Shown here: positions 22,806 through 50,820 of the stretch, one piece after another
Layout: each line of letters opens with the position of its first letter
Position numbering within the stretch: the first letter of the stretch is position 1
Source: Salpingoeca rosetta
Lineage: Eukaryota > Protista > Choanoflagellata
Length of the DNA: 64,000 bases
Direction of reading: 5' to 3'
Assembly: GCA_033442325.1 (NCBI GenBank)
Contig: JAWQFM010000012.1
Location: 1,127,577 to 1,191,576 of the forward strand
Translations under genes and position numbers: made by a program
The notes under the pieces: generated by a model
Databases searched by the model: none
What the model was told of the DNA's origin: nothing
The model's input: the letters and a program-made list of their open reading frames with translations, nothing else

Positions 22806-25800
22806 ATGGCACCCCAGCTCTGTGTTTTGCTCGCGGACGTCCGCTCGACGGACGTTGAGAAGCAAGCTCTCATTGACAAGCTACTGAAGGAGATGGCCGC
22901 AACACTCGACCTGCTCAACACTCATGTGCATGTCCGGACAACACAGGCTGCCGAACAAACAGCAGTACTCTCGGCCCTGCAATCGCTGTCCGACCTCATT
23001 ACCAGCATCGCCAAGCTCGTGAAATGCCTGTAAGTCGTTTTGGTTCAAGAGACAGTGCGTTTGTGCGTGCGTGTGAGCGTGTGTCCTTCCTGCTGCTTCA
23101 TGACACAATTGGCGACAGCGACCCAGCAACAACATCAACTCAATGAACCTGTCTTGACGCTGGTGGCTTGTGCTCGTTGTGGTCGACCAATAGCTCTCCT
23201 CCGCAGGGCACGCCACGGCATGCGACGGACGCTCTGTGGGAGCTGTGCATGGATGCCCTCTCTGCCGCCCGCGATCCCCAAGACCAGCAGGCGACTCCCC
23301 TCCAGTGGCCAAAACGCGGAGACGACACTGTCCGGATGTGCCAAGTTCCCAACTCAAGCGCAATCAGCATCGCCATCGTCTTTACTCAAGCCGAGGTGTG
23401 TATGTGTGTGTGTTTGTGTTTGTGTTTGTGTTTGTGTTTGTGTTTGTGTTTGTGCTTGTGTGTGTGTGTTTGTGTTTGTGTTTGTGTTTGTGCTTGTGTG
23501 TGTGTTTGTGTATGTGTGTGTGTGCTTTTCCGTCCTGTCCTGTCCTGGGCTTTCCCTGTCTGTGCGTTTTGCGCAAATAATCTCGTGGTGCCTTCTCATC
23601 AACGCCCCTGCATTGCCACACGCAGGCAAACCAACTGCTGGAAAGCGCGACAGCCGCGCCCGAAGCCGTTCCGGAGCACAAGCAGGTATATGTACACCCA
23701 CATGAGTTGTTACACCGCTGTCTCTACCACGCCACTTCACCTGTCGTCATGATTTGTTCACCGCACCTCACAGCCGAGGCATCTTCACGCACCTCACTGC
23801 GCAGGCGTTTGTGAGGGCGTGCAAAACGGGCAAGTTTGAAGCAGCGCTGCGCATCGTGCAATCGCAACCACTCCAACCTCCTGCTCCAACCTCCAGTGAA
23901 ACATCCCACAACGACAACGTAAGTGGCCCTGTCGACAGTGTGTGTGTGTGTGTGTGCGCGTGCGTGCGTGTATACGTGCGTGTGTGTGTATTCACACATT
24001 GTGTGTGCTTTATCAGTATGTGTGCTTGTGTATGCGCACACTTGTGTGCATTCCCCGCTAACATTGTGGCTGACATGACATAAATGATGGTTATGTGGTG
24101 TCTACGCACACAAATGCAGGAACATGGCGGTTTCGACACGTCTGCCGCCAGTACAACAACGTAAGTCTTGAACCAGTCAGTGCTTGAGTCACTGCACCAT
24201 GCCACGAGCTCATGTAACACCTGATAGCAGTGCAACGACATTCCCCACCATCCATGTCGACCCACAACTAATTCCCACTCACCACCACCGCCATTGCCCA
24301 CCCCCCTCTCCACCATCTCATGTATCCTCCTGTCATTGTCGCTCATGGCTGTTTTGTTCTTCGCCTGTGCAGGCATGAGGAAGACGTCATCTCCATGGCT
24401 TCATCACCGCGTTCAGAGCAAAGCCCCGTCCAGGCCGCCGCGCTGGCCGTAAGCACGGCCTCAAGTGCCAGCGAAGGCCCGCGTCAAGCTGATGCACCCC
24501 GTGCTGCGGACGATGATGATGACGATGACGGCGAGGACGACGAGGACGGGGACGATGGTGACGATGGCGGCAACCATACTGGCACTGCACCTCGTGACGC
24601 CAGCGGAGCTGCCAGCACCGGCTCACCAACCTTGAAACTGGTGGTGAGTGCACAGCGCACACATTGTTCGAGTAGACAGACAGACAGACGGACAGACAGA
24701 CAGACAGACAGACGGACAGACAGACAGACACACACACACACACACACACACACACACACACACACACACACACACACACACACACACACACACACACACA
24801 CACACACACACACACACACACACACACACACACACACCAGACAACCCCACCCACCACCCTTCCTCCACACACACACACAAACGACAACAACGCTCACCCT
24901 CACATGTGTGTGCCGGATTTTGGACCCCTGATCAGAGCACCTGGCACAAGGCGCACAAGGCGTGGGCGAGAGCCAAATCCAAGGCTGAACAGCAGCGCCA
25001 GGAGGCAAAGCTTGTCTGTGCACTCAATACCCTGAGTGCGGCCAACTTGTCTGCGCTTTCGCCCGCCGAAATGACCAAGTTCTCAAAGGGGTTTGAAATG
25101 TTACCTACCTACTTCGATTATGGGTGAGCCTGTGCCGCACACCATACCGCTATGCATGCTGGTTGCTTCTACACGACCTCACAATCAATTGCGTCTGACC
25201 TGGTGTCGCCCCACGCCACACCACATTCTGACAAATGCGGTTGCCGGTTCGCTCACGGGTGCATGTGGTCGTTGCTGTGCCATCTCCGTCTGCTGACAGC
25301 ACCTCTCTCCGCGAATGCACGCTGGAGCTGCTGCTTGCCCTTCTCACGGCAAATGCAGACCTGACGGGGGTGACGAATGTTCTTCAACGCTGTTGCAGCC
25401 TCCTGAAGGCAGCCACCGATAACGTGGCGCTGCTATCTGGACGATCGCAAGATCTCGTGTCGCGCATTGTGCTGCACCTGCTGGCACACCCCGTGCAGGG
25501 CGATGGCATCAACATCATTCCAAAGCCTGAGCTGCACACGCAGCTCGTGACATCGCTGGTGCTTGTCTGTTTCCACGACGCAAGACTGGTAGATACCAAG
25601 TACCACCCAACGGGCCAAGGCTGTGTTGACGACATTGACGCGGAGCAGAAAGCCCTGGTAAGGGCGGAGGGCATTGATGCACGATGTCTGTGCTCGCAGC
25701 TGTATTGTGATACGCACACACGCACACACACACACACACACACACACACACACGCACACACAGACGCACACATGGGACAATGCCCTCTCTGTCACACACA

Positions 25801-49800: not shown

Positions 49801-50820
49801 GCTGCCCTCGGCATTGACGTGGTGCAGATTGTGATTGGCACGGTGCCCACGTCCACGCAGCGCGCGTTCACCCGCTTCATCGAAGTGTCGTCGCCACTTG
49901 AGCTGCCAAAGGCGCTTGACATGTACTTTGAGCGCATGCATCTTCCGCAAACGAGGGGCGAGGAGGCAGACGTGGGGAAGCACAACTTTGCGATGTTGCC
50001 GGACGAGCGCAAGCAGGTGCTGGAGAAGGTGGACAAGTTGCTGGCTGAGGGGAGCTCCTTCCACACGTACGTGCGTAGCCGCGTTGAAGACGAGACTGTT
50101 CAGGCGGAGATGTTGGCGTATGACGAGGCGCCGGTGCTGGAGATTGAGGTGGTGATTGTGATGGACTGCACTGGAACCATGCGGCAGTGGATGCGAGCGG
50201 CGAGGGACCACGTGCAGGAAATGGTCCGGTTTGTGCGGGATCAAGCAGAGAAGACGTACACTGGGGAGGCCAAGGTGCGGCTTGGGTTTGTTGCGTACAG
50301 GGACTACGACTGCCGTGAAGTCACGCAGCAGTGCGACCTGACAGAGGACATTGACAAGGTGACTGCGTTCATTGCACGGCAAAAGGCCACTGGCGGCAAG
50401 GACAAGGCCGAGGAGGTGCTGTCTGGGCTGCGGGCAGCAGCCAGCATGAAATGGACGGTGAACCCATCCGCCATGAAGATGGTTGTGGTGGTTGCAGATG
50501 CGCCGCAGCACGGCCCCGAGTTTGTGGATCCACGCGTGTGGGAGCCGAAGTGGGACGCGTACCCTGACGGCCCGCCGCGGGGCCGCCCTGACCACGGCAA
50601 ATCGCACTGGGACAGGGCTGTTGAGATCACGCAGGCGCTCAAGGCAAACGACGTGCGTGTGGTGTTCACCCAAATCAACCACTTTACGCAGGTGTTTGAA
50701 GAAAAGCTGACTGGTTTGATGGCTGACAAGATGCAGGTGATTCACCTTGGTGAAAATCCAGCAGAGTTTGCAAACTCGATTCAAAACGAGATGGTGGTCA
50801 TGCTGAGCGAACTCTTGTGA
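22806..50820 (+). CDS. Giant midasin-related protein (~8,666 aa): six AAA+ modules, helical linker, Ig-like repeats, U-box, three vWA domains
   Basis: Phase-consistent GT-AG exons 22806-23029, 23194-23395, 23626-23685, 23805-23918, 24120-24160, 24373-24643, 24936-25123, 25300-25657, 25977-26112 and 26414-50820 (total 26,001 nt). The 8141-aa ORF is unambiguous; the 5' exon model is less certain. Confidence 0.9.
28560..36110 (+). other. Six tandem midasin/MoxR-clade AAA+ modules
   Basis: Walker A at 28579 GETGVGKT, 30031 GPSGASKQ, 30940 GSQAVGKT, 31903 GPTSRKT, 33727 GPPASGKV, 34996 GPTACGKT. Walker B LYIDE, LVLDD, FLNDE, LHLRD, IVLKD, LVLND. Midasin-style segments: W.DGP...[28 protein letters not shown]. 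Confidence 0.9.
32407..32532 (+). repeat. In-frame 63-bp tandem duplication encoding acidic DNEDANWE(E/D)[10 protein letters not shown]
   Basis: gacaacgaggatgccaactgggaaga.gc.cccgcagattttgacagcgaggaaga occurs twice in succession. Confidence 0.95.
42340..44100 (+). other. Tandem beta-rich Ig-like (ASH/PapD-like) domains
   Basis: Recurring signature 'hxhxNxG..(P)h' plus 'h.PG...h.h.h': [83 protein letters not shown]. Confidence 0.65.
46414..46610 (+). other. U-box E3 ubiquitin ligase domain
   Basis: [65 protein letters not shown] fits the U-box consensus P..F.CPI....M.DPV...GHT..R..I..W......P.T.......L.PN..L...I..F. Confidence 0.92.
48262..50817 (+). other. Three tandem vWA domains (~48262-48880, ~49411-49930, ~50140-50817)
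   Basis: vWA1: [21 protein letters not shown]. vWA2: [24 protein letters not shown]. vWA3: [33 protein letters not shown]. Confidence 0.88.

Follow-up and report, generated by a model that had tools for sequence, protein, structure and literature searches.

Does an open frame of 8,141 codons in the choanoflagellate Salpingoeca rosetta encode the organism's midasin, a counterpart of the giant ubiquitin ligase RNF213, or a machine of another kind? The frame occupies positions 26395-50820 of a 64,000-nucleotide stretch of contig JAWQFM010000012.1 (hereafter the window; C12:1127577-1191576 in an assembly of 55.4 Mb and 68 contigs). It is stop-free, it lies on the + strand, and no other open frame of the window exceeds 573 amino acids. 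Comparison with other proteins suggests that its product is a member of an old, uncharacterised family of eukaryotic giants related to, but distinct from, midasin, and that in the choanoflagellate branch of this family a U-box, or a RING-like variant of it, was inserted between an immunoglobulin (Ig)-like array and a cluster of von Willebrand factor A (vWA) domains. Residue numbers count along the 8,141-codon frame, nucleotide positions are those of the window, and all features described are on the + strand. The window gene is referred to as A and its two paralogs in the same genome as B and C.

Domain architecture of the giant protein

The part of the product that precedes the ring is an N-terminal region (residues 7-676; 26414-28422) that matches no Pfam family, is only 25-37% identical to its counterpart in paralog B and diverges fast between paralogs. 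It is followed by a ring of AAA+ modules, in which the Pfam AAA_5 matches sum to an E of 2e-71 and five stretches pass individually. A hidden Markov model (HMM) trained on the family delimits six modules, the same number that it finds in every relative and in midasins. Full ATPase motifs are confined to AAA1 (residues 677-924; 28423-29166; Walker A GETGVGKT, Walker B hhhhDE) and AAA3 (residues 1473-1676; 30811-31422; GSQAVGKT and DE), and these two modules are predicted to be active. The motifs are degenerate in AAA2 (residues 1156-1376; 29860-30522; GPSGASKQ and DD), in AAA4 (residues 1785-2274; 31747-33216; GPTSRKT, one residue short, and RD), which also contains an Asp-rich insert at residues ~1935-2095, and in AAA5 (residues 2402-2587; 33598-34155; GPPASGKV and KD). 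AAA6 (residues 2820-3165; 34852-35889; GPTACGKT and ND) may bind nucleotide and probably does not hydrolyse it.

Behind the ring lies a linker of ~2,150 residues (35890-42342) without a Pfam match, which we infer to be helical. A linker profile built from five family members recovered only chance coiled-coil matches to haemagglutinin HA2 among PDB sequences. The linker leads into an Ig-like array (residues ~5317-5901; 42343-44097) of five or six beta-sandwich domains of ASH/HYDIN/CFAP65 type. An AlphaFold2 model of residues 5235-5975 is all-beta, with a predicted local distance difference test (pLDDT) of 80-92 over ~480 residues (about residues 5315-5795), and the tandem beta-sandwich structure that it displays is the one shared with ASH/HYDIN-type arrays. 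In a Foldseek search with this model the best 21 matches are all chains from entries of the ciliary central apparatus (9ijj, 7sqc, 7som, 7n6g; E 2e-26 to 4e-15), and generic Ig arrays such as those of cadherins and titin rank next at 1e-13. Pfam gives a weak match to Ig_CFAP65_4th, below threshold, and we read the array as ASH type from such sub-threshold HYDIN/CFAP65/ASH matches. The region between the array and the U-box (residues 5902-6673; 44098-46413) has no Pfam match and is all-helical in a low-confidence model; the AlphaFold2 prediction for residues 5950-6790, which includes the U-box, has a mean pLDDT of 44 and is usable for the U-box only. An ESM Atlas search with residues 5100-6800 yielded nothing usable.

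The U-box itself (residues 6674-6743; 46414-46623) scores 36.7 bits against PF04564, for which the cut-off is 21.4. Its hallmark positions CPIT, DPV, GHTFSR, W, HPLT and PN are all present in an alignment with orthologs, its best PDB sequence matches are the plant PUB U-boxes 7c96 and 1t1h (E 1e-5), and in the AlphaFold2 model it forms a beta-hairpin and a helix at a local pLDDT of 69-78. It thus resembles classical U-box E3 ligases (plant PUBs, CHIP, Ufd2/E4) in an above-cut-off domain, in the hydrophobic and Pro hallmarks and in aligning best to PUBs. It differs from them in being embedded in a giant AAA+ protein, in which no ARM, TPR or Ufd2-core partner was found, and some of its orthologs, unlike classical U-box E3s, keep RING-type Cys pairs. 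The ligase element of the window protein is this U-box, and no zinc-finger family reached threshold.

A poorly conserved Ser/Thr/Asp-rich linker (residues 6744-7291; 46624-48267), recognised by its composition and without a Pfam match, separates the U-box from three vWA domains. The first, vWA1 (residues 7292-7445; 48268-48729), matches Pfam VWA/VWA_2, and the motifs of its metal ion-dependent adhesion site (MIDAS), namely DNSIS, GT and TDG, are intact and are conserved in A, B, C, the Monosiga ortholog and the metagenomic relative P0002. The second, vWA2 (residues ~7668-7860; 49396-49974), resembles the MIDAS domain of midasin, with DMSAS, T and TDD intact, a BLASTP match to vertebrate midasin MIDAS at E 7e-8 and a weak PDB match to 6qt8 (E 0.02). 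The third, vWA3 (residues ~7916-8135; 50140-50799), is of VWA_4 type (PF25106, 30.7 bits against a cut-off of 27) and carries the motif DCTGT.

A preliminary description of the window, made from its sequence alone, had proposed this order of domains in a single chain. The stop-free frame, Pfam, the family HMM and AlphaFold2 bear it out: six AAA+ modules, real Ig-like repeats, a U-box and three vWA domains are all recovered (the Foldseek matches of the repeats to tandem Ig/ASH arrays reach E ~1e-26), and on predicted domain content a ring ATPase, a U-box and MIDAS-type vWA domains are indeed combined in one chain. The helical regions that it had also named are called, before the U-box, from the low-confidence model and otherwise from the absence of domain matches.

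Triple-vWA tails were also seen in two shorter proteins. In the sponge Corticium candelabrum (XP_062502325.1; P0175, 1,264 residues) the tail follows an N-terminal part of ~330 residues, in which neither a RING pattern nor a U-box profile had a match, and a search for AAA modules found none; in the metagenomic protein P0177 (2,541 residues) it occurs together with an N-terminal RING.

Relationship to midasin and to a wider family of giants

Among PDB sequences the ring matches Rea1/midasin best (E 4e-48), followed by NorQ and CbbQ, and within E<=0.001 the ring half matches no PDB chain of RNF213 or dynein. Midasin and the window protein have in common six concatenated AAA_5 modules of the MoxR clade with an odd/even alternation, a long linker, acidic low-complexity stretches and a C-terminal MIDAS vWA domain. 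Sequence comparison nevertheless indicates that the window protein is not the housekeeping midasin. A separate MDN1 ortholog is located at C1:1043588-1058634 and is colinear with vertebrate midasin at 38-68% identity, compared with 23-33% identity, in scattered pieces, for the window protein. The MDN1 lid family AAA_lid_5 (PF17865) matches the genome only at C1:1046543 (E 2e-35); neither it nor PF21108 matches the window protein, and AAA_lid_7 stays sub-threshold there (16 against 22.7 bits). The five midasins aligned have canonical AAA2-5 and degenerate Walker B motifs in AAA1 and AAA6 (with, in one fungal midasin, an additionally degenerate AAA1 Walker A), whereas AAA1 and AAA3 are the modules predicted to be active here. 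The window protein is, in addition, ~3,000 residues longer than midasin and adds the Ig array, the U-box and two further vWA domains. The early view that this is not the housekeeping midasin was therefore correct, and the possibility that it is the genome's sole MDN1 fails.

Where, then, do its relatives lie? In a search seeded with the ring, proteins of 6,400-8,000 residues outscore every midasin. They comprise one close relative with a U-box (P0003) and six distant ones from Rotaria, Mesostigma and metagenomes. A second search, seeded by one of the distant relatives, recovered ~50 more giants at E <=1e-176, with midasins beginning at 1e-128. Carriers include rotifers (bdelloids, with many copies), a cnidarian (Hydractinia), green algae (Bryopsis, Apatococcus and Mesostigma), a haptophyte (Prymnesium), a chlorarachniophyte and an amoebozoan (Copromyxa protea), and the database labels of these proteins are 'Midasin', 'MoxR-like ATPase' or 'hypothetical'. 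Examples are the Rotaria and Adineta proteins, Hydractinia LOC130614024, Bryopsis BSKO_10106, Apatococcus WJX74_002690, Mesostigma Mv01936 and Copromyxa protea EP01127_P008978. A Trinity transcript of Copromyxa holds one open reading frame (ORF) of 7,465 residues with at least five ring modules (the first was missed by the HMM), Ig and vWA domains.

Phylogenies of the individual modules place choanoflagellate modules 1-4 as sisters to the same-numbered modules of the giant family (support 95/98, 100/95, 100/91 and 99/99, respectively). Module 6 groups with the family at 94 in a quick tree, and modules 5 and 6, which have long branches, are unstable in the careful tree. These groupings are backed by a shared derived character in AAA4, in which a one-residue deletion of Walker A (GPT[ST]xK[TSN]) is present in 11 of 11 aligned giants and in none of five aligned midasins; the module is, moreover, ~250 residues larger in all 11 giants and in no midasin aligned. 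Degenerate Walker B motifs in AAA2 and AAA6 are likewise common to the window protein and the family. Only module 3 is sister to its MDN1 equivalent (support 92/89); other AAA_5 proteins of the genome intersperse, and apart from module 3 no deeper node of the module tree supports a six-module ancestor in common with MDN1. The protein is thus related to midasin, and descent from midasin, which the preliminary description had assumed in calling it midasin-derived, is without tree support beyond module 3, since modules 1-4 group with the giant family apart from MDN1.

Because the giant relatives carry HYDIN/CFAP65/ASH-type Ig matches and C-terminal vWA clusters (up to four VWA stretches plus VWA_4) alongside the ring, the ring, the Ig array and the multi-vWA tail are best regarded as ancestral traits of the family. 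The wider family differs from the window protein in keeping a canonical AAA5 (degeneracy of this module is confined to the choanoflagellate clade) and in lacking the U-box. In a profile search with the U-box region no homologs were found in the wider giant family; they occur only in A, B, Barroeca (P0003/P0318), Monosiga (P0001), the metagenomic P0002 and Salpingoeca kvevrii (P0172), and the position behind the Ig array and ahead of the vWA cluster is the same in all of them. The proteins most closely related to that of the window come from the choanoflagellates Barroeca monosierra, Monosiga brevicollis and S. kvevrii. The Barroeca monosierra ortholog (7,806 residues) has every part of the architecture, with six AAA_5 modules, Ig_CFAP65, VWA_2, VWA_4 and a U-box match at E 4e-12, that of Monosiga brevicollis (7,261 residues) has the same, and the S. 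kvevrii ortholog is a transcript model that covers the C-terminal 3,672 residues only. The gene is thus not isolated: its own genome has two paralogs, and orthologs occur in three further choanoflagellates.

The inserted domain is a classical, cysteine-poor U-box with conserved hallmark residues in A, B and Barroeca. The domains of Monosiga (P0001, residues 5861-5956), P0002 (residues 6153-6237) and S. kvevrii (P0172, residues 2226-2299), which are orthologous to window 46414-46623, retain CxxC and CxxC pairs, and that of Monosiga is RING-like according to Pfam. One orthologous position therefore looks like a natural series of RING-to-U-box intermediates. In the chlorarachniophyte member (P0097) the Ig region is followed by a canonical C3HC4 RING motif, detected by regular expression, the Pfam RING match being below cut-off, and this hints at recurrent fusion of ligases in the giant family. 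As judged from these comparisons, the choanoflagellate clade appears to have lost AAA5 activity and gained an E3 domain.

The preliminary description knew of no characterised protein with this architecture. The combination of ring, Ig array and multiple vWA domains turns out to be widespread in eukaryotes, and what appears peculiar to choanoflagellates (this genome, Monosiga, Barroeca and S. kvevrii) is the E3 insertion alone. The claim that it was undescribed holds: full-text searches, including searches for midasin paralogs, found no description of the architecture, of the Monosiga locus tag or of the family. Two comparative papers that cover MoxR-vWA systems name only dynein and midasin as eukaryotic six-module descendants.

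Gene structure, transcription and paralogs

The DNA around the giant frame has a G+C content of 50-62%, and the short open frames upstream of it are separated by CA/TG microsatellites, so that this upstream DNA looks like the exons and introns of a protist gene. A contig from the RNA run X4, which matches the window exactly, splices from 25657 to 25977 and from 26112 to 26414. Both introns (25658-25976 and 26113-26413) are GT..AG, and the frame is continuous across both joints. The giant exon therefore starts at 26414, not at 26395, and the gene extends upstream. This terminal exon (26414-50820; acceptor AG at 26412-26413) contains 8,135 stop-free codons and the stop, and encodes all recognised domains. 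It is preceded by a small coding exon of 45 codons and one base (25977-26112), over both joints of which the contig is exact; this exon is conserved in both paralogs, with 57% amino-acid identity to its counterpart upstream of B and C. The 3' end of the next coding exon upstream (25235-25657) is proven by the same contig, whose end matches 25627-25656 and continues at 25977, with a donor GT at 25658; the frame of this exon is open from 25235, a position that marks the opening of the frame rather than a mapped 5' boundary. The protein is accordingly at least 8,135 residues long, and upstream exons probably bring the total to about 8,600; a putative start ATG at 22806, as in the preliminary description, would give ~8,670. 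Searches for these with the N-termini of relatives (tblastn) and against the upstream DNA of the paralogs (tblastx) recovered only exon 25977-26112, and a profile of G+C at third codon positions did not discriminate upstream exons. A 362-codon open frame at 20976-22064, just upstream of the proposed gene start and with long Lys/Gln/Asn runs at its own start, is probably low-complexity non-coding or untranslated sequence.

The gene of ~25 kb is real and transcribed. Runs X4 and X5 belong to study P2; X4 gave the spliced cDNA contig, and X5 is counted as RNA by association, which is a guess. They contain 0.95 and 0.94, respectively, of the sampled words of 40901-50900, the corresponding fractions for the 5' stretch with its introns being 0.34 and 0.08, and the X4 contigs that are exact to the window copy have a depth of 2-8. 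Three runs of another study, whose RNA status is likewise guessed, contain 0.40-0.61 of the words from the 3'-terminal 10 kb but no words from the 5' stretch, which, if they are RNA, we read as 3' bias on a very long mRNA. Genomic runs contain 0.92-0.98 of the words at both ends of the gene. Stranded raw RNA reads are few, and all are oriented as expected for a + strand transcript; the majority differ in sequence from the window. RNA reads covering 28.5-31.9 kb at 95-99% identity were rejected as evidence for the window copy, as all 33 of their 33 recurrent variant letters match paralog B; they therefore document expression of B. An X4 contig with the variant letters of B (30736-31459) has a joint at 31586-31815 that skips 228 bases and has non-canonical GT..GA ends. 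In our reading the B transcript differs in length within the acidic AAA4 insert, and the skip is not due to splicing of the window gene.

Both paralogs are located on contig 6. Paralog B (C6:1289197-1313232) is open over 8,012 codons, colinear with A throughout and endowed with the same U-box, and it is better expressed (X4 contig depth of ~30 against 2-8). Paralog C (C6:295377-312152), open over 5,592 codons and 93% identical to B, lacks B residues 4709-6959 with the frame maintained. The missing stretch runs from the last part of the linker through the Ig array and the helical region to include the U-box, so that C provides a natural deletion control. Its frame ends before vWA3, and a run of 988 N bases begins ~1.2 kb downstream, so that its 3' end is uncertain.

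The divergence of A from B is very uneven. The two proteins are 37-39% identical over most of their length, 94-96% identical over residues 1251-1750 and near-identical at vWA2, a domain that is near-identical among all three paralogs. At the DNA level, window positions 28493-32030, 32839-33168 and 49150-49950 are 87-91% identical to the paralogs on contig 6. Synonymous divergence (dS) between A and B is 0.10-0.12 over AAA2-3, 0.3-0.5 over AAA1-2 and about 0.5 around vWA2, and is otherwise saturated. Such locally low dS amid saturation points to gene conversion, and not to constraint alone, over AAA1-3 and vWA2. The homogenised parts contain the two predicted active sites (AAA1 and AAA3) and the midasin-like MIDAS (vWA2). 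The N-terminus, the linker, the Ig array, the surroundings of the U-box, vWA1 and vWA3 have diverged.

Proposed mechanism and competing explanations

How might such a chain work? In the MoxR clade of AAA+ proteins, to which midasin belongs, the ATPase is partnered by vWA domains that bind substrate in a metal-dependent manner (PMC3495828, PMC7159879), and in midasin the MIDAS domain grips the client and the ring and linker supply force (PMC3495828, PMC7159879, PMC11603028). In the mechanism that we propose, the vWA domains, two of which have intact DxSxS...T...D sites and of which vWA2 is of the midasin MIDAS type, would capture client proteins, possibly by way of an acidic side chain, in the manner in which the Rea1 MIDAS binds ubiquitin-like (UBL) domains. 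ATP turnover at AAA1 and AAA3 would then move the linker and so exert a pull on the client or remodel it. U-boxes recruit charged E2 enzymes, and the U-box of the window protein could in this way bring about ubiquitylation of the captured client or of the machine itself. That the window protein is a giant-family member with an inserted U-box, working by MIDAS capture, ATP-driven remodelling and client ubiquitylation, is the explanation toward which we lean, with slightly more confidence than doubt.

Systems coupling an AAA_5 ATPase to vWA domains are known from prokaryotic MoxR-vWA pairs and eukaryotic VWA8, and the ring has weak Pfam and PDB matches to bpMoxR, NorQ and CbbQ. These systems differ in being single-module hexamers or three-module proteins of 300 to 1,900 residues, where the window protein joins six modules in one chain. 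RNF213 is alike as a giant single chain with a six-AAA ring, of which only two modules are competent, and an E3 ligase; as described, it has a dynein-like core, a RING and an RZ finger, and is without vWA or Ig domains, whereas the window protein has a U-box ligase and an AAA_5/MoxR-type ring. The likeness to RNF213 that was initially suggested finds no echo in sequence similarity (within E<=0.1 the C-terminal half has no RNF213 or dynein match either) and stands as an analogy only, albeit an attractive functional one for surveillance of the cytosol (PMC7311170, PMC12075652).

A role in cytosolic surveillance, be it quality control or cell-autonomous defence, is favoured over a housekeeping role, as a weaker inference, because the engine is constant and the arms vary, copies have multiplied (three in this genome, many in bdelloids), the distribution is patchy and ligase fusion seems to recur. 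A bolder reading, which we regard as speculative and rather doubtful, would make the giants a third, unnamed lineage of MoxR-derived six-AAA proteins beside dynein and midasin, and the choanoflagellate members a cell-autonomous E3 surveillance machine, analogous to RNF213, in which gene conversion keeps the motor (AAA1-3) and a ring-docking MIDAS (vWA2) the same in all paralogs while the parts used for recognition (linker, Ig array, vWA1 and vWA3) diversify. Only a few ring ATPases consist of six fused AAA modules (dynein, midasin and RNF213), and each has opened a field; the present analysis delimits another such family, with a clear sequence signature, in several eukaryotic supergroups. As the organism appears genetically tractable, the coupling of force, MIDAS capture and ubiquitylation in one chain is directly testable, and it bears on surveillance of the cytoplasm in the closest relatives of animals.

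Several observations weigh against capture, remodelling and ubiquitylation by a single engine of this kind. Similarity to the Rea1 linker was not detectable with the five-member linker profile among PDB sequences, and the helical region beside the U-box folded poorly in AlphaFold2, so that the mechanical analogy with midasin is carried by the ring and vWA2. With four of the six modules degenerate, the ring might act as a slow switch and not as a motor. Paralog C is open without the part from the Ig array to the U-box, and ligase activity is therefore not indispensable to every copy; the Cys-containing RING/U-box intermediates of Monosiga, P0002 and S. kvevrii are of uncertain activity. Expression of the window copy is low, with 0 copy-specific reads at the 5' end in three RNA runs of 2026. 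As none of the RNA runs contained a read or contig covering the whole 25 kb, internal transcription starts are possible.

Among the competing explanations, the one that fares best, while still improbable, holds that the protein is a MoxR-vWA assembly chaperone whose clients are remodelled and not ubiquitylated, the U-box being regulatory (self-ubiquitylation, turnover) or a scaffold for E2 docking. The studied MoxR-vWA pairs, namely midasin, RavA-ViaA and CbbQ/NorQ, are all chaperones or maturation factors (PMC7159879), NorQ and CbbQ are among the PDB matches of the ring, and most members of the wider family, as well as paralog C, are without an E3 domain. However, the hallmark residues of the U-box are conserved in A, B and Barroeca, and each of the four choanoflagellate lineages sampled has an E3 domain in this position; together with the RING in a distant member, this suggests selection for ligase function.

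Somewhat less probable again is a cilium- or centrosome-associated machine, in which the ASH-type Ig array would dock on the axoneme or centriole and flagellar components would be remodelled or ubiquitylated. Consistent with this, chains from central-apparatus entries take all of the best 21 structural matches of the array, well before cadherins and titin, the Pfam matches across the family are to HYDIN/CFAP65/ASH/Cep192-type Ig domains, and flagella or cilia are present in most named carriers (choanoflagellates, rotifers, Mesostigma, Bryopsis, Prymnesium and Hydractinia). Yet the family has members in the coccoid alga Apatococcus and in the amoebozoan Copromyxa protea, which is not known to have a flagellar stage. 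The named relatives listed include none from a vertebrate, an insect or Chlamydomonas, and we know of no such giant gene in these organisms, which is unlike the distribution of a core ciliary protein. The number of copies varies and is high in bdelloid rotifers, and ASH/PapD-like folds are also found outside cilia.

It is very unlikely that the long frame is an artefact, with adjacent genes or misassembled paralogs read as one, or with the AAA and E3/vWA halves expressed separately. No single read or contig spans the gene, paralog tracts of 88-91% identity could mislead an assembler, and the S. kvevrii transcript model is confined to the C-terminal part. Against this, 8,141 stop-free codons are beyond chance, colinearity over the whole length extends to paralog B and to the orthologs from Barroeca and Monosiga, the Copromyxa transcript unites ring modules, Ig and vWA domains in one ORF, and genomic runs contain nearly all words at both ends. 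The explanation that we find least credible, that this is the organism's midasin or a redundant copy acting in 60S ribosome maturation, can appeal to the Rea1/midasin matches of the ring, the MIDAS-like vWA2 and relatives automatically named 'Midasin', but is opposed by the separate colinear MDN1, the differing pattern of active modules, the clustering of modules away from MDN1, the absence of MDN1-specific Pfam matches and the extra Ig, U-box and vWA domains.

The genome also encodes further multi-module AAA_5 proteins, at C22:~825654-831500, C14:~538000-548000, C3:~814500-816000, and C23:~472300 and ~360400. Their frames range from 1,949 to >3,200 codons with three to four modules each, they are distinct from MDN1 and from the giants, and one of them may be the counterpart of VWA8.

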